A DNA stretch of 64,000 bases from Marsupella aquatica (Eukaryota > Plantae > Marchantiophyta), in contig OZ316898.1 of NCBI GenBank assembly GCA_973895155.1, positions 4,216,480-4,280,479 on the forward strand, read 5' to 3'. Under the pieces are notes generated by a model that did not search any database, had not been told where the DNA came from, and saw only the letters and a program-made list of their open reading frames with translations. Below, piece by piece: positions 23,420-57,200 of this stretch; the stretch's first letter is position 1, and the number at the start of each line of letters is the position of its first letter. A program made the translations under genes and the position numbers.

Positions 23420-23441
23420 ATCACTATATGCATTAAAACTG
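23420..23441 (+). repeat. Left terminal inverted repeat
   Basis: ATCACTATATGCATTAAAACTG; reverse complement of 51804-51825 at 21/22. Confidence 0.88.
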
Positions 23442-31185: not shown

Positions 31186-31200
31186 TAGCTCCCCACTTAA
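31186..31200 (-). promoter_or_regulatory. Polypurine tract overlapping the integrase C-terminus
   Basis: AAGTGGGGAGCTA directly before the LTR TG; the integrase stop lies inside the LTR (31174). Confidence 0.75.
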
Positions 31201-34200
31201 TTGTGAAGCGTCCTCGCGAACAACTTCATCTTCGTCCATATAGTATTTCTTGAGGCGGTCATAATGGATGCGAACTGGATATACCTCTCCCGTAATGTTG
31301 GCCAATTGCACGGAGCCATTGGGGAACATCATGGTTACTCTAAAGGGTCCTAACCAGCGAGTGTAAAGCTTTCCTGGAAACCTACTATACCTACTGTCAT
31401 AAAGTAGCACAAGATCACCGGTATGAATACTAACTACTTTTAACCTTTTATCATACTGCTGCTTCATGATATTCTGTCTATATTCTACTCTCTCGGCTGA
31501 AATCATTCTCGCTTCCTCTAAAGCTTCTAACCTATATTCTCGCTCCTTTAGGCTCTCCTCCGCTCAGGCTCTTTCCTCAATTGTAACTTGAAATGTCGGT
31601 ATCTCAAGTTGCATGGGTACCAAGGCTTCTTGTCCAAAGGTTAAGAAGAACGGTGTATGACCGGTAGTGGATTTATAGGCCAGATTGTAAGCAAAAACAG
31701 CAGCAAACAATTTATCATCCCAATCGAGTTTGTTCTGAGCTACTGTCTTGTTCAATATCTTTCCTATGATTCCGTTTGCTCGTTCTGTCAACCCGTTTGC
31801 CTTTGGATGGTAGGGAGTAGTAGGCCTATGTTTAACTAAATACTGCTTATTTAAACGACTAATTATATCATTCAAAAAATGGGTTCCTCTATCACTAACT
31901 AATTCTAGGGGTGCTCCATACCTGGTGAAGATCTGCTCATACATGAATCTAGCCGTAGTAATTGTATCATCCTTCGTTGTTGGTCTGGCCTCTACCCATT
32001 TAGTTGCATAATCCGTAGCCAGGATTATGTACTTGTTCCGTCGAGGGTGGGTCAGTGGTTTCAGAGGTCCAATGTAATCAATACCCCACTTCTCGAATGG
32101 TGCTAGAGGTAGAATAGGGTGCAGTGGATGCCTGGTGGACGCCCTTGGTCCTCCCGCTCGTTGACAAGGATCGCATTGTTTGATAAACTGATAGACATCT
32201 TTGTGCAAGGTGGGCCACCAGTAACCGGCATTTAATATCTTCTTAGACGTGGTTACTGGGGCAAAATGTCCTCCGGCCTCCTCTCCATGCATGGCCCGTA
32301 GGACTCATTTTACCTCTCTCTTCTCCAAACACCTTTGAATCGTGCCGTTGATTCCATGCTTGTGCAGTATGCCTTTAATGCACTGATACTGTCTGACCTT
32401 CCGCACAAAGACTGCGGCTTGCTCTCGGCTTAATCCTGGCTATAATCTGGAAGTGCTGAGAAATTGTAAAATCTCAGGGTACCATGTACCAGCTATTTCC
32501 ACAACGAATAGCTCCTCGTCGGGGAATCGATCATCAATGCAATCCGTGGCAGGTTTACCTGTGATCCTTGAAAAGAAGTCGGCGTTGGCATGTAACTTTC
32601 CTGGCTTGATCCTCAGCTCATAGTCAAACTCCTGTAATAGCAAAATCCATCTTGCTACTCTGCCTGTAAGGTCCGGCTTATTGACTAGGTACTTCAAACT
32701 TTCATGATCAGTATGAAAGATTACCTTGTACCCTAGTAAATAATGCCTAAACTTTTTACAAGAATAAATGACTCCTAATGCTTCTCTTTCCGTGGTAGAG
32801 TAGTTCCGTTCGGCATCGGCAAGCTGACGGCTTGCGAAGTATATGGGATGGTCCCTTCCTTTCTCATCCAACTGACTTAGTACTGAGCCAATACAGAAGC
32901 CCAAGACATCTACAAAAACATGAAAATCTTTGTTCCAGTCCGGTGCTATCATGACTGGGGCCTCTACTAACATCTGCTTCAATTCTACCACCGCTGTGAC
33001 TCGTTCGGGTGTGGGTTCGAAGTCTGCTCCTGCCTTGAGCATATTGGTTAATGGTAAAGCCAGCTTGGCAAAATCCTTGATGAACCGGCGATAGTAACCA
33101 ATGCATCCCAAGAAGGATCTTACATCCTTTATGTTCTTAGGTTGCATGATATCTAGCCATACTGCTAGCTTACCTTTGTCAATCTCAATGCCCTTCCTTG
33201 ATACCTTGTGACCTAGTAGCACCCCCTCGGTTACTGCAAAAAAACATTTATCTGGGTGTAACTTGAGACCCACCTCTCTACATCTCATGAAGGTTTTCCT
33301 GAGGTATTTAGCATGTTTCGATGCCTTCCCGAATACTGCAAAGTCATCAATGAAGATTTCCATGAACTTTCTCAAGTAATCATGAAAAATGTTCACCATT
33401 AATCGTTGGAACATAGCTGGTGCGTTGCAGAGTCCAAACGACATACGATTGAAGACATAGATCCCCCATTCCGTGATGAAGGCCGTCTTGATTTGGTCTT
33501 CCTGCCGAATCCTGATTTGGTTATAACCAGAGTATCCATCCATGAATGAATATAGTTCATGACTGGCTACCATGTCTAGTACCATATCAATAAACGGTAA
33601 AGGAAAATGGTCTTTTAATGTTGCTTCATTCAGCTTCCTGTAATCCTGACAAACCCGGATCTTGGGTTTACCATCGGGTCCAGCTTTCTTGGGAACTATC
33701 ACAATTGGAGACACCCAGTCTGAATGCAGGACTGGAGTGATGAATCCAGCTTCCACTAGTTTGTCGATTTCTGTTTTGACCAGCAGGGAATACTTCGGGT
33801 TCATCCTTCGAATTGGTTGTCGAAATGATTTGGCTCCTAACATGAGATCAATTCGATGTTCCCCTAGTGTTGGATCTACTCCCTTTAGATCTTGGTGACT
33901 CCATGCAAACACATCCTGAAATTCAATCAATAAGTCACTGATCTCTTTCTCGAGCTCAGGTGCTAGGTTTCTCCCTAAGTTCAGTTCTCTTCCCTCTCCT
34001 AAGTCGAGCTTCCGATATTGCCGTGCTTGGATCATATTAATCTGCTTCTTCAAATTCGGGTCCAGTTCGGCTTCCAGTCTCTCTAATCTCATACCTCCAT
34101 AAACTGGGATCTCGGCTGGACTAGCCGAGTCGGTCCCTTCCTTGGTGTCCATAGATTGTCCCCTTACCGGTCTATTCGGTTTTGAATTAGTGGTCGGCTC

Positions 34201-34346
34201 CCCTTCCTGCCTTGGCTCTGGATCGTGTCTGTCCATCTCATCCACCTCTTGCTCCTGAGAGTTAGGCCGCTGTGCTCTCTCGGCTTCTAATAGGGCCTCA
34301 ATTTGTTCTGCCCTCGTAATCGGCTTGTATGCCGATCCCTTGGTAT

Positions 34347-37340: not shown

Positions 37341-37386
37341 TACCTACGCTTCCGTTCTAACTTCATATCTCACGGCTTAAGAAATG

Positions 37387-37405
37387 CCCCCTCCATCTAG
37401 CGCCA
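37387..37405 (-). promoter_or_regulatory. Primer binding site
   Basis: TGGCGCTAGATGGAGGGGG, 4 nt from the 5' LTR; identical in A2. Confidence 0.82.
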
Positions 37406-37409
37406 AAAA

Positions 37410-40400
37410 TGTGGTGCGTCCCATGGCTCCCTAAACCCAAGAAACCCCCCAGCTCAAGCCGATTCCCGCAGGTTTCGTGCTTGGCGAGGCCGTTTCCGCG
37501 GCTTAGCGGCATGGGACGCTGCTAACCTTCTACTACTACTATTAACATTTTACACACATATACTGGACAGATCCTTCATCGGGTCATGAGATACGTAGCC
37601 GGCCTAATATAGGCCTTCCCCTGTCTTCCCCTGTCTTCCCCTCCGTCTTGTTAGGTATGTTTGGATTCCGCCGCCGGAATGATCCCCAATAGGCTTGGTT
37701 AAGCCGCTAAGACCTCTCTCAGCTCGACACATCCAACTCTCACTCCCCTGCTTACTTTCCTTCCTTCTGTTGATGTGGGCACTCTTCACACAAGTTAATG
37801 CGACACACAAATAGCAAAATGACTCATTCTGACTGAGTCATACCATGCACTTGCCATACAAACAGTACATCTCATACACAAGTTCTGCGAACTAAGCCGT
37901 GAGGCCAACTCTATTCAGCTCTTAGGCATGAGGAAACATGAATATACACAAGGGTCACTGTATGACTAACCGAGAGCTTCTTGTACTACTTGATCCCAGC
38001 CCGGCTGGTGCAAACTAAAAACTTGCTAAAGAAGAGGCCCTGAGCTCCCCGCTGCCCAGGTACTTATCCTGGTAGTGGATCCGCCATTCTTTGCATCGTA
38101 AGCCTAATCTACTTAACAGTAATCTACTTGCCCGAATCTACCTATGTACAGCAAGGCAGGAGCACAAGTGTTGCTCCTACCAGTGGGACCGCAATCCCAC
38201 TAAGCTAAGTGTCAGGGCCGCTCTTGGTTCTGATCCTAATCCTAAACGTGGAGATCCGCGCCCGCCCTGCCCACTCACGCCTCCTCCCTCCACGTCCGCC
38301 CTCCCTAAAAGGAACGGCGCCCTTGCACCGTCACGACACCGGTGGTGGATCCTCAATGGACGCCCCCAACACTTCCTCCTCAGCCACTACCGTTGGCCCG
38401 CCTACTGACAGATTACCTGCCCTTGACCGAGTCAACTCTCCATCGGCCTGACTGGGTCCACCTTCGGCTTCAGCCTCGACACCGGCCTCGGCAATACCCA
38501 CGGCTTCGGCCTCAGCCACTCCCACGGCTTCGGCTTCAGCCACTCCCTCGGGTAGTTGGATCCTTAGCCGTGACCCTGTCTGGGGTCGGTGCTGGGTCTA
38601 CCTCCTTGATCACCACGGCCTGTGAAGTCGTATTACTCCTTGACCCTGAAGGTTTCCGCTTCTTCTTCGTTGGTGGCTCGGCAGCTGGTCCCTTCCCCTT
38701 CCCACTTACTTCCGGCACTGGTGCAGGTGGCGCGGCTTGTCCTTCGGCAATTACCACCCATGGTAACTGGTTTGTCCCAACAGGAGATGGACCTGCTGCA
38801 GCTAAGCATTTAAATACTGCGGCTTGTTTCTTCAGCCGCTCTATTTGGTTGTCGGCCCGCCGCTGTAGGTTCTCCATCTTCCTCATGATTTCCTCCAACT
38901 CCTCTTGGGTTTCATCCAGGTCCTTACGTGCCCCCTCCAGCTCATTTTTGGCCTCCTCCTGCTCCCTGTGGGCTTCCTCCAATTCCTTCTTCAAGGTAGC
39001 CCTCTCCTCCTGGGTTGCTCTTAGCTCCTTGTCGAGCTCTGCAATGATGACAGACTCCATCTGGTTCATCTTGGCGTAAGTCTGTTCGAGCATCTCGTCC
39101 TTCTCCCTTAGGTCGGCCTTGAAGCTGGCCGTCAGGGACGCAAGCTCCTGCTGCAACGCCATAATCCCTTGATAGGATTTCCCTAACTCGACCTCCTTCT
39201 GCTCAAGGGCTCCGCGGATTTTCTCGAGCTCCCCTTTCAACGCCCATTCCTTTCTTTGGGTCTCCGCCATGGCCCGACTGTTGGCTGTTATGTGGGCCTC
39301 CTCTGTATTCTTCAGCTCTTGCTTCCACTTTTCCCTCTCTTTGATCGTGTCGGCCAACTCTTCCTGCGTCTGAGTCAGTTTATCCTTGATATTCTGATTA
39401 TCAGCCTGCACGGCGTCCAACTGCCCCTGCATGATGTTCAGCTCATGTCGTTTAATCCGCAGTTCATCTTGGGCTTTCTTGGCCGCCCTTAGATCTTCAA
39501 TCTCGGCTCCCATCCTCCTAAGCCGCCGAATGACCTCGTCCTTCTTGCTTCTCTCTAAAGCCACCGCTTCTTCTAATTGGTGCTTCTCCAACTGCTCCCT
39601 ATGGAAAAAGGGTCCTACCTCCAACTCCTCTCCAAAGATGCCGAGCGCAAGTTCCCCACACATCTCACCATACTCCATGGCTCTATTCTTAGCGTAGGTG
39701 GAGTAAGTAGAAGTGATCGGCATCGCCCATCGTGGCCTCTGCTCCCAAGCCGTCCTGCGGATCTCTTCAATCGTGGCTAGAGGTTTGCTTCCTTTTTCGG
39801 CTAGCCGCCTGATGTCCTCCGGCCAATCTCCTCCTGGTAAATCCTTTTCCTTAGCCAGGGCGGCCTCTTCCTCCTGCTTGATTCGCTCCTGAAATTCCTG
39901 CACCGTCTGTTTTATGCCGTCGAAGCTCGGGGGAGCAACATCTGGTGGGGGAGACTCAGGGCTACTCTGCTGGTTGGGGTCCCCTCGCACTACCCTTGGA
40001 AGTGTGGGGACAAACCGGCCACAGGTCCTTACTCCTGGAACGTGATGGTCCGACCCATAGCCGGAATTATCATGGCTGCAGTCCTCCACTGCCTCCTCTA
40101 CCTCTTGGATTTCCGGCTTCTCCCTCTCCTCTTCCTCGGTAGGAGCTTCAGGCAATTCTGCCTCAGATTCGGAGCTTGAGGTTCCCACGTACATTCGAAC
40201 ACCTGGCTTGGATTCCGGCCTGATTCTCTCCTTGTCTCCAGCAAAGGGGTTTTCTCTTGTGAGCCGGTGTAGGCCTACCTCTGTAGTAGTGTCCTGCATT
40301 GTTGCCGTTGCCGTTGTTGTTGCCGATGCCGATTTCTTTTCTTTCTCCAGTAGTTTCAGCAGACTCTGCATGCCTGGTTGCTGCATCGGCAAGTCTTCCT

Positions 40401-42046
40401 TCCTGGGCCTAAACACCTGCTCGATCGTAGGACTAACAGGTGGTTGAGGCTTCTCAGCCAACGGCCTCGGCGTTGGAGCTTCCTCGGGTGCCCTTACCTG
40501 CAGGGGAAGTACCGGGGCAAAAGTCTGACCTCTGGCATACCGGCACAACAGCGGCATGTGATAGCCAAGCCGCGACACGCTCCCCATGCCGATTACCTAC
40601 TGCTCCTCCTTTAAGATCTTCTTCAATTGGTTGAGGAGGTACCCGTTGTAGTCCCGGCTTGGGTCTGGCCTTTCTGCCAAATAGACCTGTGCCTTGCCGA
40701 TCTCTGCCCTCGGCAAGTTACAATGCATGGTCACCCGCAAGAAGTCGATCATCTCTCCTATGTGCGGGTTGGTGCAGGTGTTCCGGAAGAAGCCATTCTT
40801 CGTTGATGGCCCGGGGAACGACCGGGACTCCTTGTCAGGCAAGGTCTTCCTGGTATCAACTTTGGTCTTATTGCCCATCGGCAAGCCAAACACTTCGGCA
40901 ATCACCTTGGGAGTAAGATAGAAATCCTTCCCATATATCCTCGTGCAATTGGTCTCGGGTTCCCATGACCCCACGAATTCTAATAGGTCTGACTCCGGTA
41001 CCTCCGGCTTCAGCCATGGTAATCTTACAAAGGCCTCCAAGCCGGATCCGGCCATGAAGCCTTGGTACTTCTTGGTCTGCATGGCCGTAAAGCATGCATC
41101 CTCCTCCCGTGCAAAATGTAGTTGCACCTCCACCGGTAGGGTTGCCGCCCAGCCCTTCCAGGTGTCATCCCTGGTTGGAATGGCCTTGATGGGATCGACC
41201 TCCTCCTCTTCGGCTTCTCCCTGCCTCCTGCTCTGCTGCTCGGCTGGCTTCTTTGGTGCCGCCGACCTCGTTCTTTTTGCCGGGGTGGCTTCATCGTTGA
41301 CGGCTCCCTTCCTCTTCATCTCTGCTGCCGTGGAGGTTTCTCCTAGCACCGTTGCCTGGGTCCACCTTTCCGTGCTACCCTTTAATTCCCAGTGTATGTC
41401 GTTGCAGTTCTTGATGGCCTCTCGGATGCCGACGACGCTGTCTTTGCAAAACAGAAGATCGGCGAGTTGATTGGAAGTAGGCGTCCACAGGAACTCGTCC
41501 TTGATGAGTTCGCCTCCTAAGAAAGCCATCTTCTGCAGCTCCCACAATCGAGCGAGCTCCTGCCGTTCTCGAGCTGCCCTTTCTGACTCCTCGTCCTCGT
41601 AAGTCTTGATGTACTCAGTTGCCCGTTCGAACAGGCATCCCCAGAAATGTGCCGCTTGATTGACGTTGCTCATACCCTCCTTAGGTTGATCGTCGGTATC
41701 TACTCTCTCCCCGAGTGCTTGCCTAAGCAGCTGACAGTAGTTGGCCTCCCGTAGTCGTCTGCCTAGTTCGTGCTCGCAAATGAGCCACCATCTCCTGCAA
41801 GCGCTCCTTACCCCTCTCCTCTGCCGGTCCTTCTTCCCGTTGATCCTTCCTAGCCGCCGACGCTTAACGCGCCCTAACCCTAATCGGGTTTTCACCCTCA
41901 GCCTTACCTCCGGCCTCTGCCCGGGTTCCATGGTTGCCCCTAATTGTTTATATTTTCCTTGTTTTGTCACTATACTAAGGTGTTCCTAGGGTGCCTTCCT
42001 GCTTTACCCACTTAACCGGCCGAGTGATTCCTGTCTAGGCATCACA
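37410..42046 (-). repeat. 5' LTR of A1 (4637 bp)
   Basis: Duplicate of 26549-31185; about a dozen substitutions seen by eye, no indels. Confidence 0.97.
38331..41970 (-). pseudogene. LTR-encoded ORF, 5' LTR copy
   Basis: Same 457+683 aa ORFs and the same TAG as in the 3' LTR. Confidence 0.88.
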
Positions 42047-43202
42047 TCTTGCAACAACCTTCTCTTTGGATGGAATCAATGGACTCCTCGTTAATTTTCA
42101 AAAGTGCCCTCGACTCCAAATGCCTTTTCTTCCTCTCCTCAAGATCAAATTTTGTCCTCCTAATGAAATTGTATGGTCTTTTTGTAGGTTTACCATCACC
42201 ATCCGAATCCGGATCGCCCTTAGTTCGACCCGACTCCATCCACTTCTCTAAAACTTCCTCAAGGATATCCCCAAGAAACCTTTGAGACGAAATCAATAGA
42301 AGGGATTTGATTTCCCACCTCACCAAGCTAGGGGTACCAACACGGATATTTGGAAATAATCCGGGTTCATTGATATTCACAACAGCAACACCAACATGAT
42401 CTGCACCAAGAAGTTCATCGTCAACGGCACCTGTTTCAAATGGGATCGTGATAACACCTGTTGCAACCTTTCGACAATGAGAAGCGTCATACAAATCAAC
42501 CTCCTCCGCCATCCAGTTGGAACGTAGTGTAAAATCTTTTAATGGAAGATCATTGAAAATATTTGAACTACCAAACACGCCAAAATCTCGTAGAGTGCCC
42601 TTTCTAGAAACATGCGCAACATCCCAGATAACCCAGGTATGCAAGGCCTCTTCTATTGTATCAGCTCCAGGGTGCGAGTATGGCAATTTTTGATTTCCCT
42701 TAACAATATCAAATATTCTTATACTAATGCGACCAACCCCGAGTGTTTCAGTATGACAAATATCCATCGGATTTGTCTTGAAAATGACTCCATTTGCAAC
42801 CAACTGATCAAAAATGAACATCTAAACTTCATCTCCTTCCTTGAACACGTCCTCTTCAACCCTTGCATCAATTTTGGATTTATCATTTCCAGCATCTCCA
42901 GCCAAAGAGAAATCATCGACATTGATTCTTCGGCGCAGAGTTGATGACCTCAAGTATGCCAATGCACAATCCCAAATCACGCAGGAGTCAATTGCCTCAG
43001 CCAATGTAGAAAATTTGGGCGAAGGAAATGGAAGTTGACGCAATGCATCAAAACACTTTTCGATCAATACCCCAATTCGATTGTCCCCTAGACAAATATT
43101 CTGTATAGTATCCTGGGGGTCAACCTTTTGAACTATCCCAATTGCCGTTTCAAATCCATCGATCACCAATGACACTTCATCCCCTCGTGTAAAATTGATC
43201 AT
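42047..43202 (-). pseudogene. Transposase N-terminal part with three tandem Tnp1/En-Spm(TnpA)-like beta domains; one in-frame stop (42822)
   Basis: Three repeats of GDEV..VA.G......LG....V.......LP.P....T..EA....VIW; continues in frame across the Gypsy insertion. Confidence 0.75.
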
Positions 43203-43324: not shown

Positions 43325-43660
43325 CATTCAAGTCGGGTCGGAATTATTTCGACCCTCCTCCAACATTATGTCTTGAAATGATTGAATTGACTAAACATTT
43401 ACAAGTCGGGTTGGAATTATTTCGACCCTCCTCCAACAATATGTCTTGAAATGATTGAATTGACTAAACATTTACAAGTTGGGTCGGAATTATTTCGACC
43501 CTCCTCCAACAATATGTCTTAAAATGATTGAATTGACTAAACATTTACAAGTCGGGTCGGAATTATTTCGACCCTCCTCCAACAATATGTCTTAAAATGA
43601 TTTAATTGACTAAACATTGATAAGTTGGGTCAGAATTATTTCGACCCTACTCCAACTATT
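43325..43660. repeat. 73-bp tandem array (~4.6 copies) with an imperfect palindrome
   Basis: Units start at 43330, 43403, 43476, 43549 and 43622; core GGGTCGGAATTATTTCGACCC; inverted core at ~43759-43775. Confidence 0.92.
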
Positions 43661-45214
43661 AAGTTGAAATTATGTCAAAACTATTTGTGAAACTATCTTG
43701 CTTATGCTTTTATATACCAGTTTAAAATGCTAGTTAAGATGACATAGTCAGGTCGGCACGAAATAATTCCGACCCACTTCTAGAAACTATGTTAGTAATC
43801 ACATAAAGGGGTACAGTAAGTTCTACACATGCTAGAATGTGGATAAAGGTCTAGAATGAGTAAAATATATGATCTAGAACCTAATGTGTAAATCTTAATC
43901 TAGGTTTGGCTTAAAGGTATTGAATTAGATGTACTTGAGCTAGTACTTCTAAGATAAATAAATAAAATCACTAACCTGCTCCGCAATATATCTCTGTCCA
44001 CCCTTGTACAAGCTAAATGGGTACCTTGGATGCCAGCATTGTAACTCTTAGCACCACAGTGCTCACCAGTGCCCTTACTAAACCTTGCATTCAACCATGC
44101 GGACCTAAACAAGGCACTCGGACAGAGGAGAGTCAGTGATCGTACCAATCACTGTCTAAATGACAATGAACCAAAAAATGGATTGTGGGAGGTCTATACT
44201 CAGTTTGAGAGGCAAAAAGCTTACACATTACCCAGCACACGAGTGGACACCAACAGATCGGGCACGGGTGGATGAGGCACGCACCCAGCACACAAGTAGA
44301 CATCGGATAGGGTGTCAGCCAATCACTCACGAGTGATAGGTGAGTTGCGAGCACACACCGCTGACAGCTCGGAAATTTAAAATTGGTAGGTGAGTCGCGA
44401 GTGGTCGTGAGTGGTCACACCATCGGTGACTCACGATCACATGCACCGAGGAGGGTCTCCATCATTGGCGCGCATTGATGCCTCCGTACCCTCTCGGATC
44501 CTTGCCTCCTTGGACTCCTCGCTCACAGGGGGTATAGGAAGGCAGGCCTTGCGCTTGAGGCCTCATTTCCTTGCCTCCCTCTTGCCTCCTCTCTCGTCTC
44601 CTCACTCCTTGCCTCCCTCTTGCCTTGCTCTAGGGCTTTTGTTTTTGCCTCGCTCTTGGGATTTGTTTTCCGCCTCGCTCTAAGGCTTTTATTTCCGCCT
44701 TGCTCCCTTCCCTTTTGGGTCGCTCCCTCGATCATTGTTTGCCTGTTAGTGCCCTCTTGCAGCCTGTGGCATTCTCCATTGCTACCACGTGTCATCTTAA
44801 ATCTCACTCGCCCCTTACAATGTCTACTTCCTCCAGTTCTGAAGCTTCCACCACCTCCGCCAGTTCTCAAGAGTCATTGAACTTCAATTATAACTCTCTG
44901 TATGAATATGACCCTGAAGACCCGAATGTCCAAAAATTGGTTAACAATGCGTTGGAGGCATCAAAGAAAGCCCAGTTAACTTTTCCACGTAAGGCACCAC
45001 CTGCTTCAACTTCTTGCCTCGCCCTAAGGGCGAGGCAACTTTACTTTAATTTGGATTTCAAACTTCTTATTAGGAAAATTTCTATATTCCTTTGCAGTCG
45101 CCTCGCCCCAAGGTCGAGGCGACGTCTACTTCATTCTAGATTTCTTGTTGCTCCGAAGGCGTATTGGACCTTGTATCTTACATTAATAAAGGATCTTTAG
45201 CTATATTCTATTTT

Positions 45215-45648
45215 TTGCCTCGCTCTTGGGACGAGGCGATGTCGTCTGCATTCCTCAAATGTAGTCTACATTCCCAGAAGTTGCCTCGCCCTTGGGACGA
45301 GGCGATGTTATCTGCATTCCTAAATGTTGTCTGCATTCCCAGAAGTTGCCTGGCCCTTGGGGCGAGGCAATGTCCTCTACATTCCTAAATGTTGTCTGCT
45401 TTCCCAGAAGTTGCCTCGCCCTTGGGGCGAGGCGATGTCCTCTGCATTCCTAAATGTTGTCTGCTTTCCAGAAGTTGCCTCGCCCTTGGGGCGAGGCGAT
45501 GTCCTCTGCATTCCTAAATGTTGTCTGCTTTCCAGAAGTTGCCTCGCCCTTGGGGCGAGGCGATGTCCTCTGCATTACTAAATGTTGTTTGCTTTCCTAG
45601 AAGTTGCCTCGCCCTTGGGGCGAGGCGATGTCGTCTACATTCCTAAAT
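45215..45648. repeat. 64-66 bp tandem array (7 copies) in intron 1, each with a hairpin palindrome
   Basis: GCCTCGCCC-TTG-GGGCGAGGC (some copies degenerate) at 45217, 45283, 45348, 45413, 45477, 45541 and 45606. Confidence 0.93.
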
Positions 45649-46794
45649 AATGTTTGATTGCTTGGATGAGGTGGCAGGGCTAATTGCACTAGGAGCAAAG
45701 AAGATTTTGCAATCTTCTATTTGTCGCCTCGCCCCAAGGGCGAGGCACCTTGAAAGTTTTCCACATGTCAATGTTAAAAATATGATGCTGACCATTTTGT
45801 TTTCAATGTTTCTTACCAGGAAAAAATCTTGAGAAGCCGGAGTTAAATATTATGGACGAGGATATCAAGGACTTTGTTTTCCCTGACCAAGATACTCCAG
45901 GATTTAGATGGGCACTAGAAGTTGGGGTGTCGGCGGAAGGCAGTCTCTTGATTTGTTTCAAGGGCCTCACAAGTCAATTGAATGACCGCAAGACAATTGT
46001 TACTCTAGGTCCAGTCATCCTTGTGAACACGGACAACAACCGCAATGCAATGATTATTGTTGAGTCCAATGAGAAATCTCAGTGGATGAGACTTCTAGTG
46101 CCAATAAAACTCTACTCGACTTTACTGAATGTTGAGTGGATGGCTCGATTGGAGATAAGCGTAGCTGATATGGGATTCTTCCCAGATGGAGTAACAATTG
46201 ATCAGATGTTTGAGAAGTCGCGTTCTCAAATAAGTGGAGTTGACCTAGTGTTTGGATTTCTCTACGTAAAGAAGCACATGCATGACAATGCGGACAGTGT
46301 GGACCCTCCGTCTACTTGGATAGTTCAAAGGATGATTGATAAGGCACATTTTTCATACGAGCAAGCAATCGACAAGAGTTTCATTTTTTGTCCAGAGTTT
46401 CAAGAGGCCGTGTGCCGGACGTGGATTTCAGAGATGAAGAAAAAAGAAGCAAAGCATAAGGCAAAGGAGAGAAAGAAGACAGTGGAAAGAAGTGCGCAAT
46501 CAAAGACAGAGAAGAAATGAAAGCTTCAAGAGCCGGTTGTTCAACAAGAGAAACAATCTGGGAGTTCACGCCGTAAGCAGATGGCTAAAAAAAATGAAGA
46601 TGATGAGGGCCCCCAAAAAAAGCAGACAAAGAAGGCAAAGGTTGTGAAATCAAAACCAATGTCAGGGTCGACTTCAAACTTTGTCTTGCATCCAGAGAAT
46701 GATATGTGTCCGACAGAAGGACCCAAAGAAGATGATGTGCTCAAAGGCCAAGAGGTTTTGCGTAATATTGAGCAGTATTATACTTTTGGCATCC

Positions 46795-47160
46795 GCGAAG
46801 TTTTTGATATTCCTGTAAAAAGTATTAATCCGCCATCGGCCGTTTTTGTATATCGAATGTTCAATCTTTCGCATGCAATGGAGATATCAAAGTCTATGAT
46901 GAAAAACCCTAGACAGGAACCACAAGTTGCTGATTAGATTCCGTATCGCGAGAGCACTAAACAGTTGCTTCATTATGACAACACACCTCAGGATAGGAAA
47001 GAGTTTTTGATTGGTGTGAAGAAGCATGAGATCCAATTCCTTGCCATCAGTGGCCAGCATTCTGCAAGAGCTGCCCAATGGATCCAAGGGTGGGCCGAGA
47101 CTGACGCCAAGCTGACAAATCTTGCCAACAAACTAAAGTATAGGAAAGCAAGGATCCTAT
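46795..47160 (+). other. ParB/Srx-like domain
   Basis: VFDIPVKSINPP...YR.....H..EISKSM...FLAISGQHSARAA resembles the ParB/Srx GxHRxxA signature. Confidence 0.6.
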
Positions 47161-48369
47161 CTGACCTCACTCCGAAGACAATTTTGGTTGAGCATTCAAG
47201 TTTATCGAATGCTGTCAATGATACTATGCAATTTAAGTCTTGTTTTTTAGAGACTATTGTTCATGCACGAAGGCAGTTTGAGGAGTGCGGGAAACCGCCG
47301 CGTCCAGGGATTGGGACCAATCAAAATACAGACAGGAAAAACTATCAGGTACATGTTGGAGCAACGCAAACTATTCTTGATCCGCTTTGTTTAAAGATTG
47401 TCAATGGTAGAGGTTTGCCTCGCCCCAAGGGCGAGGCTGCCTTTTCTTGTTTTCCTTGGTTAGAAGATTAAAGCAAATGTTTGCCTCGCCCTGAGGGCGA
47501 GGCAACCTAGACTAGTCTCTCTAAGAATAATTCCCTAGTTCCGTTTCAGTCAATTGCGGTTAGATGTAGAGGTTCGCCACGCCCTTGGGGCGAGGCGGCT
47601 TAGCCTGTTTCAAACATAGGTATAAATTTTCTAACATATGCATTGTACCCTGAAACTAATGTCAAGTCCATTGGATATGCAGGATTGGTTTGCCCTGGCA
47701 AAGGTTACAATGGGGAAGTCAAGCCTAAAGAGCATTTATTGGTTACTTTTTGCCGAAGATGAGCTCTTTGAATTATGGCAGAATGTGTGTGCAAAATGGT
47801 TGAGTGGGAAGCTCCAAGACGGGGCTGGTGGGTATGGAGGGCCAAGACCCCCAAAATTGATCACTCTCAGTACCTTTCGATGTTTTGAAGGAGAGATTAG
47901 TAGCAAACAGATAATTGAGATCTTGAAGGACGTTGAAGAGGAGCGTGTCTTGCTGAAGAAGGATATCACCAACAAATCAGAGCTTGTCGCAATGGGAGAC
48001 TTGGCCCTTACAATCAAGATAATGTCCAAATTGAGAACAGTCATTATTGGCTATTTCGTGGAAAAGTATCGTGAGAAGTTTCCTGTTGGCACATCTTGGG
48101 AGTCTCTGGTGATATTGTCGCCTTCCTTGAAATCTGAGCTTGAGATGACAAAATTGAGGAGAGCAGCAGGTGAGGTTTACCTCAACAATTCATTGAAGAA
48201 GAATGTGGTCAAGGAGAGTTTCCCACAAAGTCTGATGGTCAGACTAGATGGGTTGTATTGTAAAGAATTTGGTGGGATTGGTCGTTCTCGCATGGAGCCT
48301 TTCTTGACATTTTTTAGTGAGAATTTGATGAAGACGACCGTGCCGGAAATGCTACAAGAGCCTTCGCCT

Positions 48370-49085
48370 TTGTGTCCTCTTGCCATTGTTGACTTCAGTA
48401 GGCTCCGACAACATGTTTGGACCGATGCTGAAATTATTGCATTACTGCAATACATTGTGGATCTTCCAAGAAATCCAACAATTGTTGTTGTCATGACTGT
48501 GCATCCGGGGCCACTTGCTGCAAACATTTTGAGTGCCCTTAGGAAATTGCAACATGAAAAGGGAATGGACATCCACGTCGACTACGGGAGCTATCGACGG
48601 AGTGATACACCAGTTCCAGAGGGCTTACTTTTCAGTTGTGGTATGGAGGAGATAATCTTTGCAGGAATCACCACTGAGGAGAAATTTGATTGGAAGCAAG
48701 TGTTCAGGCCTGGATTTAATTGCCAATTTTCTTACAATTCGGCGATCGACCCTGATTTCCAAGTGGAAGACAAGACGGAGAAGCGAGATAAGAATAAGAG
48801 TAAGACAAGTAAGGAGACAGAGACTGAGTCAACTTCGGCATTTCACATTGGAGATTTCTTACAAAAGGCTCCCATGTTTGAGATGGTGGGAAGTAGAGGT
48901 GGCTTTGTGAATATTCACGCTAAGCCAAAATGTATGCTGCAGAGTATTATTGAATTTTTTTCGGCTGAAGGGGAGACTATACTTGACTTTTTCTCAGGAG
49001 GACAGGTTATGAAGGTGTCATTGTTGTGTTTCAGAGAATGCTTTGCGTATTCAAACACTGAGGATGAATATGATTTCACTCAGGC
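48370..49085 (+). other. Beta-class N6A/N4C methyltransferase-like domain with degenerate motifs
   Basis: NIHAKPKCMLQSIIEFFSAEGETILDFFSGG (motif X-I) C-terminal to LAIVDFS (motif IV position). Confidence 0.7.
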
Positions 49086-50314
49086 ATATGGAAGGTTTCT
49101 CTGCGAGAAAGTTCCTTCCATAATGAGTGACCGGATGGGCAGTTCCAAATTTGGTAGAGCTCGCAATGGGGTTTCCGAGCATGTTGGTGCCAAAGAAGGT
49201 GTACACCAGGGCGAAGATGATATTGAGGAAGGAGAATTGGGTCACGACACAGACGACAGGGTCACCCGAAATTTGGATGAACGTGGAACACAAGTGGTAG
49301 GTATTCCCTACTTTGGTGTGGGGTTGGCTGATGTTGTGGGTCGACCTGAGGGCGACGCACCAAGAAATCCCTTTGCCGGTGTAGAGAATTGGATGCACCA
49401 ATCGGACCCAGATCTTACATCGTCCACATCGGACGCACATTGGAAGGCAACCGCAGATGGTCTAGGCAATATTGACGTAGTAGAATTGGGAGAAATGTCA
49501 GACATTGTGCTTGCAAAGGAGGATGATCGTCAAGTACCTGAGACCGCTGCAAATGAAGAAGAGAAGGCAGGTGCTTCAAATCCTCCCGTCTCCTCTATAT
49601 TGCTCATCAGAGACTAAATTGGTTTTTACAAGTGCTTCTACAGGAAGCCCCGTAGTATCATCATTTTCACAAAATTCTGGATCCGAGATCGACAGGACTG
49701 GATATATGAAAACAGTCCGTCCTGCAACTCATTTTATATGGAGAAATGGACCAAAGGTTGGAATGATAGAATCACTAGACGATGCTCCAAAGATAATGGC
49801 AAAATCAGATTACGAAAAACTGAACTTGAGACTGAGCCCAGTTTTTGCACCCCCATCCTTTGAAGAGCAACTTCCCAGTGGTATCAATTCCGAGATACAG
49901 AGTGTTCTAGGTGATCAAACAATAGATGAATTTGGGCATTTTAGCATTGGAAATTATTAGCCCTTTCTTTGGTTCTTGGTATTTTAATGATAATCTAAGC
50001 TTTATCTTTGTAATAATATACTTTTTTACAGACCAAAGTTCCGTCGTAGAATCTCCTTCCTCAAAGAATTTTGTTGGCATTCCCTTGGAAAGCGTTGCTG
50101 TGGAGGAAGGGTTTGACCCAGGTATACTTTGGATCTAAAAAATGGCAATTGAATGTAATTAATGTTTTTCTAGGAGGGTCGCCCCAGGGTCGTTCCTCTC
50201 TACTTCAAATGCTATAACAAAGTTTGTTTGATTTCAAATTTTGAGAGTTTTCCTCTGTAGTAATTGTTTAAACTTTGAGTCGCATTGACTAAGGGCTTAT
50301 GTTAATGTTTCCAG

Positions 50315-51354
50315 AATTCACTCCAATACTACACTCTCCGATCCGGCGAAAGCTCTTGGTTCTTGACCTTAACAAGATTTGTTGGGATTGCATTAAGACC
50401 AGAAGCTCAGGACCATGGCGAAATCAGACAAGTTTACGTGGTGTGCACTGGGGGAGACGTGGAGGGTTTAATTTCATGTATGTGGAGCGCCCATACCTCC
50501 ACGAATTTCTATATGCAGCTTTCATGGTTTTTGACGTCGCAATTTGGACCTGTGCAAGGAGGCCAAAAACAATGGACTTAATGGAGTTGATTTTCACTGA
50601 GGAGGAGCGACAGAAGTTCAAGTTTGTCTTTACTCAAGAAGATACCTTTGATAGTTGCATCCAAAGGCCAGATATAACAGATGGGAAGGCCAATTTACTT
50701 CTGAAGAATTTGCAAACCATTTGGGACCGTTTTCCAGAAAAATATGATGCTTCTAATACAGTTCTTATTGATGATTCTCCATTGAAGGCATTTTTGAATT
50801 ATGACGTGAATGGATTGTTTCCAAATCCATTTACTCACACAGCTTCAAATGACACTTTTTTGCCCGAGATATTATGGCCGTATCTTTGCAAATTGAGAAA
50901 GGCTTACTGCGTTCAACATTATATCACTGTCAACAATCCAAAGTGGTCTGTTTTCAATTTATTAACAAGCAAGGAGGATCATGCTGCCATCTATGCTCTT
51001 TTGGAACAGAAGTGGGGAGATTGTCGTTGTATCCATAGGGAGTTTGGAACCATCTTGGATGTGACTCCTGAAGAGATTCCTTGGGACGGAAAGAACGAGG
51101 TGCAGCATTACCCACCATTGGAGACGTGGACCACGGATGAGATCGAAGAAACTGCAAACGTAATACTTGGAGACAACTATTCTAGTCCTCATACACAAAA
51201 TGGAAGGCATTTTATTTGGAAAGTTCTCAGAACTAGGGATCTCACCAATAAGTTTAAGAACCACCATGCGAGAGATACTTGCAACCGTGACATCCGCTAT
51301 GATAAATCAGGAAGCAGACTTTCTTGTTCAAATGAGTTTTGTCTTGATCATTAG
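50315..51354 (+). CDS. Last exon: FCP1/NIF-like HAD phosphatase domain, open frame
   Basis: RRKLLVLDLN, ERPYLHEFL, FDVAIWT, LLKNL..IW, NTVLIDDSPLKA..N. Confidence 0.85.
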
Positions 51355-51803: not shown

Positions 51804-51825
51804 CAGTTTTAATGAATATAGTGAT
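51804..51825 (-). repeat. Right terminal inverted repeat
   Basis: CAGTTTTAATGAATATAGTGAT followed by TAAC. Confidence 0.88.
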
Positions 51826-54285
51826 TAACTTAAAATAACTTGCTGGCCAGTACTATAGTATTGCCATCAAGAATAGCACCCTTATTACGAGAAAATCATA
51901 ATAAAATTGTGCCTAAAGCACATTGGTTTTTGGTTTTCTCCTGATTCTTTGGGGCATTTGTGTGCATTTCTTATTTTGAGCAAAACTTTCAAGTAACACC
52001 TACTCCAACAATTCTTGCAGACTGCCCCTTTGGAGCTGTCTATAGTAGTGCAAAATGTGACAATGACACATAGATTACAAATTTCATGTAGGGCCCTTGA
52101 CCCAAAATATGCTATGGAATTGTGTTATCAATTCACCTATTTGTATTGTCAAGCTTCAGTTGATGAGTCCTTTCTAGCGTCTTTCTTTCCAAATCTTTCC
52201 TCAAATCAAGCAAGAATTATCTAAGGTTAAGGAGGTTTATGGTTAAGTTTCATGCAAGAGTTTTCTTTAATCTTTCTAGATTGTTTTTAAAAATAATTTA
52301 ATTTAATTTAAACACCAATTTAGGGAGGGACAAAGCCCCAAAACACCCCCTGGGGATGAAAGCCACCCAGAGAGAACTGCGGCCACACGGCAAACAACAA
52401 CAAAACCACTAATCAGGCCAGGGGTCAAAGGAGCACCACCCTAAAAGGGGAATCATCAAAGTCCAGTGGTGGTTTTTGTCATTTCTCCACGGCCAACGTC
52501 TTTTCCTCCTGTCATTGCTATCCTGTCCTACATCTCTCACTTTATTATATCTACTGTCCTGTCTTCTCTTGTTCGCTGGATCCAGGGTCGAGTCGAGGCT
52601 CTTGTAACTAGTCTCAGTGGTGACATGCAAATCCCAATGGCCACCCTGGAAGAGCTCCAATTTGACTCTGTTATCTACTGTTGTCTTCTTCATCAGATAT
52701 CAGATTAAGTGCGATCGGGCTTTCAGTTTTCTCCCAGGGTTGTAGGACCACATGCCGCGACCACATGGAGTTGACAACCAAGAGTGATTCTGAGTTGTTT
52801 TCCTTTCTTAGATGTTCAAGTGCAAATGTGTCACGCCATCGGCCTAGCCCTTAGGCCAATCTACGTCTAAGACAAACACTTCCCTTGCCAGTATTCGGGT
52901 TCGGGCAAGGAGGGACGTGCGGAGTGTGTGTAATTCTCCCAAACTAGCACTAAGTGCGCATACATTTACTTACAAGCACGCTTAGGTATGCTTTGTGTTC
53001 CGCCGCCGGAACGTACCTTAGTCGATACGGGGTCGACCTCGGCTTACGGGCTTCTAAGCCTTTGTGTTACCGCCTTTGATCCGGATCCATTAGTACAAGT
53101 GCTCAACCCTGGCTCGCAACCCCGTACCCGTAACCTACACCCCATGCACGTTTGGCATAATGTGTTCGGCCCGACATTGATACTTGCACACGAGACTCAT
53201 ACATGCATTCATACATAACAGAAATCTCGATTTACACGAAGGAATTGAGGGGAAAGGATTTCATTCATATATGATCCTACACTTACGATTGGGTGACCCA
53301 ACACCTCGTGAATGAACGGGCCCAAGGCCGAGGAGTATACACTACAACGGAGCCCGGCTCCGCACTCACCCGACAAGATTAGTCGTATACCCTCCCCTTG
53401 GCACTCTGGCACTTCACCGAGTTTGGGACTCCCCGCACGTACCACGAATGGCCAACTTCTGAGTCTAAAATCCCCCCCCGTGCCTCTACCAGGGGGCTAC
53501 TAAATACTAAGGGCCAAGGACCAGCCTGGCCTCATGCCCAAATCTACGCTAACTTATATCCTCGCTAAGCTGGTTACGGCTTGTCCTATCAGTCTAACCT
53601 ATTCTACACAGGCTGGCTAATGTGTCAGCGCCGCTATCTTTTGGCCGGCACTTGTCCTAACAGCCTATTTTAGCTACTCCTATTTCTATTCTAAGCCTAA
53701 CCCTCCGCTAATGCCTGGTGCGCTTGCCAGAGCCGTCCGAGTGGGAGCGGCCATCTCGCTGCCTACGGAGTCTGTCGTTGTCCGTCTTGAGGAGCTGGAC
53801 TTGGTCTAGCAGAGATTTGTTCTCTTGCTTTGCCGCGTCCGTCTCCTCAGTTGCCTCTTGGCATGCCTCTTCTAGTTGATGGGCGTCGCTCGTCAGCTTG
53901 TCCACCATCTGGTTCTGCTTCTTGGCTTTGGTTTGAAGCCGCGCTACTTCACCCTGTAGGGCGGAAATCTCCGCAGTGTCATGTTGGGCCCGCTCTTCGG
54001 CCTCCTCTAGGTCTTTCTGTCAGATGATAGTTTGATTCTTCAAACTGTCAATCTGGGTCCGGAGCCGTGCAATCTCGGCCTCCTTCCCAGCTTTGGCCTA
54101 TTCGGCTAAGGCGGTAAGGGCGTGCGCATTTGCTAACAACTCATCGGCGACTGCAACCTTGGGTCGTAGTTGCAGAAGCTCAGCCTCTTGAGTCTCAATT
54201 TTTCCCTTTAGGTACACGGACTCAACCCGGTACCGCTCTATCCTCTGAAGGGCCTCCAACTGGGCCCGGCCTGCCTTTACTATGG

Positions 54286-57200
54286 TGTGACGCTGCCGGT
54301 ACGGCGGTTAATGAGTGATTCAGTCTAACTGCGCTCGGCACGCGCATTAGGTGGGTCTTAGGCCGCTATTATTAGCATAACGACAGTATTTAGGTAATCA
54401 TTAGGGGTAGGACATCATTAGGCAATAAGGGGGACTTCAGGTTCGGGCTGGCGGCGGGTCGCTATTCGCACACCCGGGTTACGAGCGTGGAGGGGCCCCT
54501 CCCTCGGGTCCGTATAACGAACTTAAGGAAGCGGCCACTGACGCACGCTGACTCAGACCGGCGGAGTGGCCGGTACACCACAAGCGTGAGCGGTTCAACC
54601 TATGGGCGTCGAGGAGACGTCGGGGATCGACAAGCCCTCAAAGTATAAAAGGGGAGCCAACCCTTTGTAGTGCACCAGTCCATCAGTCCGCGCGCCAGCT
54701 TCGACCCCAGCTCTCTCGTTCTCTCTAGGTCGCCACTACTATCTCCTCTGAATGTCGCACACGATCCTCTCCAGCTCGGCCATTCGATTCTGGACGCAGT
54801 TCCTATCTACCGGAAGGCACTTGGCCGATTCATTGAAACACGCCAACCCGCGCCGATACGAGATCGAACGCGAATACGAGAGAGCCATCCGCCTAGCAGG
54901 ACGACACCACTACGTCCTTAACTTTGACTACCCATCTCAGAGCGAGCTTTACTGACCAGCTGAGGTATCTGGGTACTTCTTCAACGGAGACAAATATATC
55001 GGGTTCTGGGAAGCATTGCTTCGGCTTCCGGACGAGGTCTTCAATATCCCGGGTACAATCGACCTGCAGCGACATCACTTCGACCACATCCCTGCCCAGG
55101 TTCGGGCTGTCATTAACGGCGAGTCCAGTACCAACCGTTCGACAAGGGCGTCCGCACTCGCTTCGGAGAACTTCTACCAGCACCTACAGAGCTTCATGGG
55201 AACTCGGCCATCAACCAACATGACCAACTCAGCCGGACCCGTACCCGTACCCGTACCCGTGCCCATGCAACCTCAGCTTCAGCTTCAGCCTCAGCCGCAG
55301 CCTAACCAAACCCCACCACCTATCACCCAGCCAGCACAGGTACGCTCCGTCATCAACGCTGTGGATCTTAGCGATGACGACGAGGCTACCCCACCCTTGA
55401 CCAGGCGGCCCAGAGGAACAAGCGCTCGGGGATCAGTGGACAACGGGTTCGTGATGAGGACCTGCCTCATGCCCGAGATAGCTGAGCGGCTGGAGTTCCA
55501 GAGGTACGCTCTCCACATGATGGAACCTTGGGGGGAGATCTCCGCCGCCCAGGTCATCCAGGTCGAGAACTATCGACCTAGGAAATGGGCGTCGTACTTC
55601 GCTAAGAAATTCCATGAAGAGACGGAGCGGCGAAGGAAGACGCTGTACATTGGCGGGAAAGCGTATTTCGCTAGCCACATCGAAATCATTCTTGAGTGGT
55701 ACGCCCGGTTTGATCGACGAACCCTTCCCCGCATCAACGTTACAAAGCTGGTCCCAGCTAGGTGGGTTTTTCCGGCATTGGAGAGACGGCCCCAACCCGA
55801 GGCCCGAAGTCCAGTGGACACGCCAGCTTCACCCACCCCACCTCCACAAATAGCTGTAATCGTAACCGAGGAGGTGCCGGAGGGGTCCGTCGTCGCAACC
55901 GTTGATGCGACCCAACTAGCCGGGCTAAGTACAGAAGTTGGTACGGCAGAGGTCTTACCCGAACCTGGGTCTCCCAAGGACCCGCCGGTGGCAATTCCGG
56001 AGAACCGGACATCGCTGCAGGAGGACACTCCTGCCCCTTCCAACGTTATGTCCCCAGGGCTGGACGTCACTGCCCCGGCCCCTGCGCGTGTTGATGTCTG
56101 CCCGTGCCCAAATCCGGACAGGCACAACTTGGACCACCCGGAACTCTTCGTACAGGGTACGTTTCTGAACGGGCTTCTGGGAGATTTCTCTCATCAAATT
56201 GCCTGGGATACCGGGGAGTTCATGGCCCGGAAGGTAGCCTGTTTCTTCAATCAGGAGTTGGTTGCCGCCGTAAAGGCAGGTCGGGCCCAGTCGGAGGCCC
56301 TTCAGAGGATAGAGCGGTACCGGGTGGAGTCCGTGTACCTAAAGAACGAAGTGGCGGCTCAAGAGGCTGAGCTTCTGCAACTACGACCCAAGGTTGCAGC
56401 CGCCGATGAGTTGTTAGCAAAGGCGTACGCTCTTACCGCCCTAGCCGAACAGGCCAAAGCTGGGAACGAGGCCGAGATTACATGACTCCGGAACCAGATT
56501 GACAGTTTGAAGAAACAAGCTGTCACCTGGCAGAAAGACCTGGAGGAGGCCAAGGAGCGAGCCCAGCGGGACACGATGGAGATAGCCACGCTGCAGGCCG
56601 AGATGGCGCGGCTCCAAACCGAGGCCGAGAAGCAGGACCAGCTGGCGAGTAAACTGATGAGCGACGCCCAGCAGCTGGAGGAGGCATGTCAGGAGGCAGC
56701 AGAGACGGACGCGGCGAGGCGAGAGAACGAATCTCTGCTGGACCAGGTCCAGCTCCTCAAAGCGGACAATGACAGGCTTCGAAGGCAGCGGGATGGCCGT
56801 TCCCATTCGGGCGGCTCTGGCAAGCGTGCCAGGCATTAGCGGCGGAGTAGGAATAGATTAGGATTAGGATTGGCTTAGTCAGGCTCTTGGGACAGGCACC
56901 TGCCTTAGGTATAGCAGCGCTGCCCTGCTGTCCAGCCTGCGTAGATTAGGATCTTCTAATAAGACACAGCCGTTTTCCGGCTTGACTGTCAGCTTAGTTA
57001 GGACCTTGGTCAGCGGATCTTCGGCGGGAGGACGCCCCGTTCCTCGGCTCTTAGTATTTAGTGCACCCCTCGGTAGAGGCAAGGGGGGGGGTTTTTAGTT
57101 TCAGAGTCGGACATCCGCGGGACATGCGGGGAGTCCCGACCTCTGGGAATGACAGAGTACCAAGGGGAGGGGGTAGGACTAAGCTCGTCGGGCGAGTGCG

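Follow-up and report, generated by a model that had tools for sequence, protein, structure and literature searches.

Whether a gene with three enzyme-like domains belongs to its plant host or to a mobile element is the question raised by the locus described here. The stretch of DNA analysed (hereafter the window) comprises 64,000 nucleotides (nt) of the liverwort Marsupella aquatica (contig OZ316898.1 of assembly GCA_973895155.1, positions 4,216,480 to 4,280,479 of the forward strand). A preliminary description of the window proposed a single spliced plus-strand gene that fuses ParB/Srx-like, amino-methyltransferase-like and FCP1-type phosphatase domains, possibly coupling DNA recognition to transcription control. 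A host role is contradicted by the surroundings of the gene, which sits in a multi-copy transposon with terminal inverted repeats (TIRs), a target site duplication (TSD) and its own transposase. The gene is a liverwort variant of a recently recognised kind of transposon accessory gene.

A cut-and-paste transposon in a liverwort

The region from 23420 to 51825 very probably represents a single copy of a cut-and-paste DNA transposon of approximately 13 kb. The features expected of such an element were found: TIRs with a TSD, a transposase inside and multiple copies. The ends and the minus-strand part of the element are as follows (all positions are those of the window; LTR, long terminal repeat; ORF, open reading frame).

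23416-23419, plus strand: left TSD, TAAC
23420-23441, plus strand: left 22-bp TIR, ATCACTATATGCATTAAAACTG (homologous TIR in Calypogeia fissa locus L001)
24024-26359, minus strand: transposase module, DUF7869-family protein (58-66% identity to the DUF7869 ORF of the C. fissa element)
26042-26547, minus strand: C-terminal part of a TNP1/EnSpm-like second protein (residues 333-501 of the C. fissa protein)
26549-42046, minus strand: nested Gypsy LTR retrotransposon (boundaries agree with the interruption of the TNP1-like alignment and with the gag/zf-CCHC ORF 34350-37340)
42039-43193, minus strand: N-terminal part of the TNP1/EnSpm-like protein (residues 1-336 of the C. fissa protein, 44% identity)
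51804-51825, plus strand: right 22-bp TIR, 21/22 complementary to the left TIR
51826-51829, plus strand: right TSD, TAAC

The element spans 28.4 kb in the window because a Gypsy element is nested inside it; approximately 12.9 kb remain once the Gypsy is subtracted, and the C. fissa element is 13.9 kb. The insertion cuts the TNP1-like gene in two, so that 26042-26547 lies apart from 42039-43193. Homology to DUF7869 covers 24024-25654 on the minus strand.

The window was compared with two loci of C. fissa (L001 and L003), one of Riccia sorocarpa (L006), an ENA/JGI metagenome scaffold (L005) and the loci L002 and L004. In C. fissa L001, TIRs of 26 nt (25/26 matched, at 1267-1292 and 15153-15178) with the TSD ATAA outside bracket the same gene set in the same divergent order as in the window, and 18 of the 22 TIR bases are common to the two elements. 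A 4-kb segment beside the ParB-methylase gene of C. fissa encodes the DUF7869 protein (Pfam 1.6e-37) and the TNP1/EnSpm-like protein. The order of the modules, transposase and TNP1-like on the minus strand and then ParB-methylase-NIF on the plus strand, is shared by the window, C. fissa L001 and R. sorocarpa L006. The family is multi-copy: up to 4427 contigs from one run aligned to 44750-50700 with a likeness of 90-100%.

The TSD was seen twice (TAAC in the window, ATAA in C. fissa) and is 4 bp long both times. Elements of the Sola superfamily, which have a Sola-type DDE transposase, create a TSD of 4 bp in the Repbase classification, and the observed length agrees with this rule. Membership in EnSpm/CACTA, a superfamily with CACTA termini and a Transposase_21-type DDE transposase, was considered and rejected, as the TSD is 4 bp instead of 3 bp and the TIRs start with ATCACTA or ATCACAG. 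The match of the second protein to TNP1 (PF03017) is weak (E 4e-4 to 3e-3) and lies under the cut-off. A literature search for DUF7869 found no paper that mentions it.

Structure of the accessory gene

On the plus strand, and divergent from the transposase module, lies a gene that would encode a large accessory protein, with a NIF/FCP1-like haloacid dehalogenase (HAD) exon downstream. The protein is predicted to consist of an N-terminal domain, a ParB/Srx fold, a helical region, a beta-class amino-methyltransferase fold and a small conserved C-terminal domain. Pfam, PDB, structure and homology analyses were made on single exons. The parts of the region are listed below.

44820-44988, plus strand: exon 1 of the preliminary description, an open frame with an ATG (homologue in no related locus)
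45016-45746, no strand: array of ten 21-nt palindromes, GCCTCG-N9-CGAGGC, in a 65-nt tandem repeat of intron 1
45852-47348, plus strand: first conserved coding exon, with N-terminal domain, K-rich linker and ParB/Srx-like domain (homology, fold model)
47349-47682, plus strand: intron 2, GT..AG, phase 0, with three palindromes at 47417, 47483 and 47576 (homology)
47683-49960, plus strand: second conserved exon (homology, fold model)
49961-50314, plus strand: non-conserved spacer that includes the 90-nt mini-exon of the preliminary description and a phase-1 acceptor at 50314 (comparison of loci)
50315-51354, plus strand: NIF/FCP1-type HAD-like exon (Pfam, motif inspection)

The plus-strand ORFs are, in order, 45852-46520, 46581-46937, 46965-47471, 47638-49617, 49505-49960 and 50299-51354. 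The first three form one frame interrupted only by a TGA (46518-46520) and a TAG (46935-46937). ORF 47638-49617 passes into ORF 49505-49960, which is in another frame, with the break near 49587, and the last ORF begins approximately 340 nt after the preceding one. The ordered pieces, the two in-frame stops and the one frame break are as the preliminary description had stated.

That description also connected the pieces by four GT-AG introns into one frame of approximately 1680 amino acids (aa). The GT and AG ends are present in all four introns. Intron 2 is supported by homology, as '...SRFQ|DWQVLAK' is the junction at the corresponding place of P0002, a gene model of C. fissa, and a gap is present there in L003, L004 and L006. 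In contrast, no counterpart of exon 1 or of the mini-exon (50032-50121) was detectable in the related loci, and the donor at 49911 is not supported by the homologues. The long frame is a model built on real ORFs, not an observation. Coding status of 44820-44988 is unsupported and this segment may be 5' untranslated sequence. The homologues begin 20-25 residues ahead of a 'W.[LI]E.G' motif, which agrees with a start at the ATG at 45852.

The ParB/Srx-like domain occupies approximately 46755-47348. In the second exon the helical region (model residues 1-196, predicted local distance difference test score (pLDDT) 80-90) is followed by the methylase-like domain (48292-49125), an acidic disordered linker and the conserved C-terminal domain of approximately 110 aa, and the exon ends with a stop at 49958-49960. 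The C-terminal domain has the family motif 'IDE[YF]GSF' and ends with IDEFGHFS in the window. Both this domain (49590-49945) and the N-terminal domain of approximately 200 aa (45852-46517) are conserved and have no family assignment. The 659-aa ORF has homologues at 37-48% identity in C. fissa, R. sorocarpa and Logan/ENA/JGI contigs; a further homology search, based on the alignment of the methylase-like domain, contributed Riccia proteins alone.

The ratio of nonsynonymous to synonymous substitution rates (dN/dS) between two C. fissa copies is 0.14 for the ParB-like domain, 0.23 for the methylase-like domain, 0.33 for the C-terminal domain and 0.36 for NIF. This comparison among copies had been suggested as a check of the gene, and its outcome indicates that the parts of the accessory gene are under purifying selection.

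Decay of the window copy

The window copy of the transposon is dead, and its accessory gene is a pseudogene. The transposase module is split, the accessory gene carries two nonsense codons and a 2-bp deletion, and the copy has undergone a CpG-biased C-to-T decay. The lesions were identified by aligning public contigs to 44750-50700. The family contigs have a C at 46518 (CGA where the window has TGA) and a T at 46936 (TTG, the Leu of a conserved ADLIPY, where the window has TAG). They also have an additional CT after 49587, which restores GASNPPLSPLYCSS, so that the window has suffered a 2-bp deletion. The homologues translate through the region of the frame break without interruption ('...AGASxxxSPLFCSSxDKLV...'). 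Since the other copies lack both stops and the frameshift, the lesions are private to the window copy. A 40-nt intron at 49571-49610 had been offered as a repair of the break. It was rejected, as it would remove the conserved 'AGASxxxSPLxCSS' and the other copies reveal a deletion instead.

In most of the remaining differences the window has A or T and the family has G or C. Twenty-nine transitions were listed, with 15 at ancestral CpG sites and eight at CHG sites. Decay of this kind is typical of a methylated repeat.

The NIF/FCP1-type domain and the question of fusion

ORF 50299-51354 matches NIF (PF03031) with 61.4 bits (E 1e-16) and passes the gathering threshold of 21.8 bits. The domain also matches UBLCP1 (3shq) with an E of 1.7e-9. 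Motif I reads DLNKI in the window, with the D at 50365-50367 and the N at 50371-50373. It is D-L-N-K-I/V in the window, L001, L002 and L003 and EVEKV in L005. The canonical DxDx(T/V) is not found in these loci: the second Asp, the general acid/base, is absent, and L005 lacks the nucleophile Asp too. The Thr of motif II, the Lys of motif III and the DD of motif IV are kept.

Six loci (the window, both C. fissa loci, L002, L005 and Riccia) have a NIF ORF downstream of the methylase-like ORF and in the same orientation. A scan of metagenomes with the NIF alignment returned 23 loci, all of them ordinary NIF proteins and none with ParB- or methylase-like pieces. Fusion to the NIF exon, as it was first proposed, is not borne out by the homologues. 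The linkage is kept in the six loci, but every homologous ORF ends just after the GSF motif.

There is an even chance that NIF is a second, separate accessory gene carried by the transposon, or the last exon of one such as a Ulp1-NIF gene. A conserved stop codon follows the GSF motif, and dN/dS is unequal between the parts (0.14 and 0.23 against 0.36). In L005 (3562-6237) a Ulp1 ORF (Peptidase_C48, 6e-35) lies between the methylase-like and NIF ORFs, immediately upstream of NIF and with a gap of 107 nt. A separate gene is less easily reconciled with the short spacers, and no upstream ATG exon for NIF was identified in the window. The NIF product may arise from a shared transcript that is alternatively spliced or polyadenylated, in the way of TnpA and TnpD of En/Spm. 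Two repeated ORFs of approximately 90-105 aa also occur between the methylase-like and NIF ORFs of L005.

It is possible, although somewhat doubtful, that one spliced gene of approximately 1680 aa places the ParB-like, methylase-like and NIF domains in one polypeptide in at least one isoform of the intact copies. The six loci in which NIF follows on the same strand come from distant lineages, and the gaps between methylase-like and NIF ORFs, which can be as small as 107-340 nt, leave too little room for an independent promoter. In L002 and L003 an in-frame ATG is missing ahead of the domain in the NIF ORF, and both of these loci and the window have a polypyrimidine-AG phase-1 acceptor before this ORF. 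The 49911 donor and the 50314 acceptor are both in phase 1, so that splicing between them would preserve the frame. However, the use of this donor would excise the conserved 'IDE[YF]GSF', which is translated by every homologue. The GT of this donor is part of a Gly codon, which is GGT in no more than three of six loci, and the window has no GT between its version of the motif and the stop. All homologous ORFs end 2-18 codons after the GSF motif or a degenerate GTN or GSH, which resembles a true C-terminus. In addition, the 90-nt mini-exon is not conserved, and in L005 the Ulp1 peptidase ORF separates the methylase-like and NIF ORFs.

The linked order is present in C. fissa and Riccia, but the annotated genes of both end ahead of NIF. 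The methylase-NIF linkage is thus a conserved one, and we consider physical fusion plausible rather than probable.

The ParB/Srx-like domain and the palindromes

The ParB-like domain was modelled with AlphaFold2 (AF2) on the L004 homologue (52-55% identical), because the window copy carries a stop. The alignment contained 48 sequences taken from a full HMMER scan (119 hits). The model has a pLDDT of 92.7 and the alpha/beta fold of ParB/Srx. The best Foldseek matches are all ParB, Noc, KorB, PadC or sulfiredoxin (Srx). VIA gave a Z of 10.1 and a root mean square deviation of 2.3 A over 95 residues to M. xanthus ParB (7bnk), and its first 29 rows are all ParB, Noc, KorB, PadC, SerK, SbnI or Srx. 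The Pfam ParBc profile matched neither the 48 members nor the full N-terminal proteins at E up to 10, and the ParB assignment is therefore a purely structural one. A PDB sequence search with the N-terminal protein returned nothing meaningful.

The domain has a motif A-I-S-G-Q-H-S-A, in which the H is invariant and the G and Q are nearly so among the 48 sequences; SGQHS is at 47049-47063 in the window. The active-site Arg of the GxxR / GERRxR box is not present in these sequences, and Ser stands at that place. ParB proteins recognise a palindromic site through a helix-turn-helix beside the ParB domain, and in the liverwort gene the part that comes next is the helical region of the second exon. 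In the ESM Atlas the nearest relative of the ParB-like domain of L004 (1895-2467) is the fungal DUF3723, a Starship accessory family (similarity 0.96, 188 shared features). The DUF3723 profile (PF12520) has no Pfam match in the 48 members or the N-terminal proteins at E up to 10, and no link was found at the level of hidden Markov models.

The non-coding parts of the gene contain a 21-nt palindrome, which is GCCTCGCCCTTGGGGCGAGGC in the window. Thirteen copies of GCCTCG-N9-CGAGGC are present in the 64-kb window (0.07 expected) and all of them are within introns 1 and 2. C. fissa and L004 have palindromes with the same outer arms and spacing, both in the 5' region and in the spacer ahead of NIF, and those of C. 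fissa occur in intron 2 as well. Their inner arms differ from those of the window but remain symmetric. In R. sorocarpa L006 the corresponding places are taken by a different palindrome, T[CG]GGGAC-NN-GTCCC[CG]A: an array with a 129-nt period between the gene modules (5124-5633) and single copies in intron 2 (11157) and before NIF (13699). No palindromes were found in L002 and L005.

This variation is the pattern expected of binding sites that co-evolve with a DNA-binding protein of the element itself, and it is consistent with a putative role of the palindromes as such sites. Alternatively, the palindromes may be unrelated to the protein and represent MITE-like hairpin insertions (MITE, miniature inverted-repeat transposable element) or recombination-prone tandem repeats that pile up in introns. 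Their tandem arrays are variable in copy number, contigs of other runs skip 481-488 nt of the array, and L002 and L005 show none. Nevertheless we regard this explanation as unlikely. All 13 window palindromes are in the non-coding parts of the accessory gene, far above expectation. Palindromes are at matching relative positions in C. fissa and Riccia and flank the coding ORFs in L004, and the dyad symmetry is kept despite the inner changes.

The methylase-like domain

The model of 47683-49137 of the window has a pLDDT of 70. Its methylase-like part matches CcrM (6pbd) with a Z of 17.0, M.MboIIA with 15.9, M.RsrI with 15.7 and the rotifer N4CMT with 15.1, and the Foldseek E is 2.4e-7. The topology is that of beta-class methyltransferases, as DFSR (48391-48402) is upstream of DFFSGG (48985-49002) and the motif IV region is thus ahead of motif I. 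The family profile matches M.RsrI with an E of 2.5e-9 across the part with NPxAKP and DFFSGG. D-F-F-S-G-G-Q-V and N-P-x-A-K-P align to M.RsrI as putative counterparts of the S-adenosylmethionine (SAM)-binding motif I (D-P-F-x-G-S-G-T-T) and of the HPTQKP motif, with the second Gly shifted. Scores for the Pfam N6_N4_Mtase profile (PF01555) are under the gathering threshold of 26.7 bits, with 18.2 bits for the window and 25.9 bits for the best homologue, L004. The window score was obtained with the 659-aa ORF; beyond this ORF and the NIF ORF, Pfam matched none of the ORFs in the row.

The catalytic (D/S)PP(Y/F) was not found, and there is no PP[YF] anywhere. The site reads CPLAIVD-F-[SGT]-R in the window and in most homologues with sequence here; variants are DLLR in P0008 and a stretch in the Riccia protein P0062 that cannot be aligned. 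It is very unlikely that the domain is an active N6-adenine or N4-cytosine DNA methyltransferase whose catalytic loop is non-canonical. Purifying selection has retained the fold and the motifs on the SAM side (NPxAKP, DFFSGG), but (D/S)PP(Y/F) has been swapped for D-F-[SGT]-R in most covering homologues and the Pfam scores stay under the cut-off.

All three folds named in the preliminary description were recovered (ParB/Srx with Z 10.1, beta-class amino-methyltransferase with Z 17.0 and NIF/FCP1-type HAD with Pfam 1e-16). Of the families it had expected, NIF was detected by Pfam, N6_N4_Mtase was below the Pfam threshold but evident by structure, and ParBc was missed by Pfam and evident by structure. 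The activities that the names imply fared worse. Amino-methyltransferase and phosphatase activities are doubtful, as there is neither (D/S)PP(Y/F) nor the second Asp of DxDxT, and the ParB-like domain lacks the Arg of GxxR.

Relationship to known systems

The closest published eukaryotic analogues, likened here by their description, are PAG2 and PAG3 of red-algal Plavaka elements. PAG3 has a ParB-like DNA-binding domain with adjoining tandem arrays of inverted repeats, and self-binding has been proposed; PAG2 combines a PF01555 DNA methylase with SET; and the PAG cassette is reported to move between transposon superfamilies (bioRxiv 10.1101/2025.02.11.637652). Like the liverwort gene, both are accessory genes of large cut-and-paste transposons. 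The best HHpred match of PAG3, 7BNR, is the second-ranked entry for the liverwort ParB-like domain. In contrast to PAG2 and PAG3, the ParB-like and methylase-like domains are fused in one protein in the liverworts, and this protein has lost motif IV of the methylase. Its partners are NIF-like (or Ulp1) instead of SET or 2-oxoglutarate (2OG)-oxygenase, and it is carried in a liverwort host by an element that has a DUF7869 transposase and a TSD of 4 bp.

Prokaryotic ParB-methylase fusions such as Bacillus cereus Bce_0392 have an N-terminal ParB/Srx domain followed by a beta-class amino-methyltransferase and are located on mobile elements (PMC5512222). The liverwort family shares this domain order, and its characterisation as prokaryote-style was a fair one. 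In the bacterial proteins both the active-site Arg and DPPY are intact, and nicking and methylase activity have been shown (PMC5512222). The liverwort family differs from them by its SGQHS and DFSR, its introns, its extra N- and C-terminal domains and its escape from detection by Pfam ParBc. A tie to the N4C methyltransferases of Marchantia or rotifers had also been drawn, for which there is no evidence beyond the shared fold.

VANDAL elements of Arabidopsis encode the anti-silencing VANC, accessory proteins paired with element-specific arrays of short motifs in non-coding regions, and these motifs vary between related families (PMC5735166). VANC has neither sequence nor fold kinship with the liverwort protein, and any resemblance would be functional. 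The family-level match to the FCP1/SCP/UBLCP1 NIF phosphatases (PF03031; 3shq) is clear. Unlike these, the liverwort domain has DLNKI (EVEKV in L005) in the place of DxDx(T/V), lacks the general acid/base Asp and is carried by a transposon, although Thr, Lys and DD are retained.

A candidate self-recognition system

In intact copies the accessory protein may act as a non-catalytic or functionally altered DNA-recognition factor. Its binding sites would be the 21-nt palindrome arrays of the element itself, in the manner of ParB and parS or of VANC and the VANDAL repeats. The methylase-shaped and carboxy-terminal domain (CTD)-phosphatase-shaped modules could then shield the element from silencing or aid its transposition. 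A more specific version, which we advance as a tentative and rather improbable proposal, is that intact copies have a eukaryotic, transposon-borne equivalent of ParB/parS self-recognition. The ParB fold and a non-methylating DNA-reading domain would nucleate on the fast co-evolving palindromes. A CTD-phosphatase-shaped pseudo-enzyme (Ulp1 in sister lineages) would interfere with Pol II/IV/V or chromatin silencing at its own element only.

Several points weigh against this interpretation of the element and its protein. The canonical catalytic motifs are degenerate in all three enzyme-like domains (SGQHS, DFSR, DLNKI), and therefore no enzymatic activity can be assumed. Binding of the protein to the palindromes is purely inferred. 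The contigs that match 44750-50700 are all DNA, with the introns covered, and no RNA or splice joints were seen among them; the joints in the aligned contigs are indels in the repeat arrays, where some runs skip 481-488 nt. Transcription, splicing and the NIF join of the accessory gene are unverified predictions. In C. fissa L003 (14400-21431) the transposase/TNP1-like module is downstream of the accessory gene and in the opposite relative orientation. This locus may represent either two abutting elements or a rearranged or non-fixed arrangement. A TIR search in L003 gave no result, and palindrome arrays dominate both flanks.

To our knowledge, very few accessory genes of transposons recognise the element that carries them; VANC of Arabidopsis is the sole proven case, and the red-algal PAG cassette is a proposed one. 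Liverworts add a second lineage of land plants in which there is a candidate: in their cut-and-paste elements, a protein with ParB and methylase folds is maintained by purifying selection next to palindrome arrays that vary between lineages. If the proposal is true, it would be a second, independently evolved sequence-specific anti-silencing system of land plants besides VANC. Liverworts include transformable models such as Marchantia, which makes direct tests of binding, DNA methylation and silencing feasible. Repeated cassettes of this kind should not be named host 'DNA methyltransferase' or 'CTD phosphatase' genes in annotations, because the catalytic motifs are absent and most copies are decayed.

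Additional features of the window

The nested Gypsy element (26549-42046) has ORFs of equal length at its two ends. The ORFs at 27675-29726 and 38536-40587 both have 683 aa, and those at 29736-31109 and 40597-41970 both have 457 aa, which makes the LTRs coding and of unusual length. In the interval between the divergent TNP1-like and ParB-like genes, at 43329-43656, a 73-nt unit is tandemly repeated (4.5 copies with 95% matches). Downstream of the transposon there is a 489-aa ORF (55016-56485) with no Pfam match in a GC-rich block (0.57).

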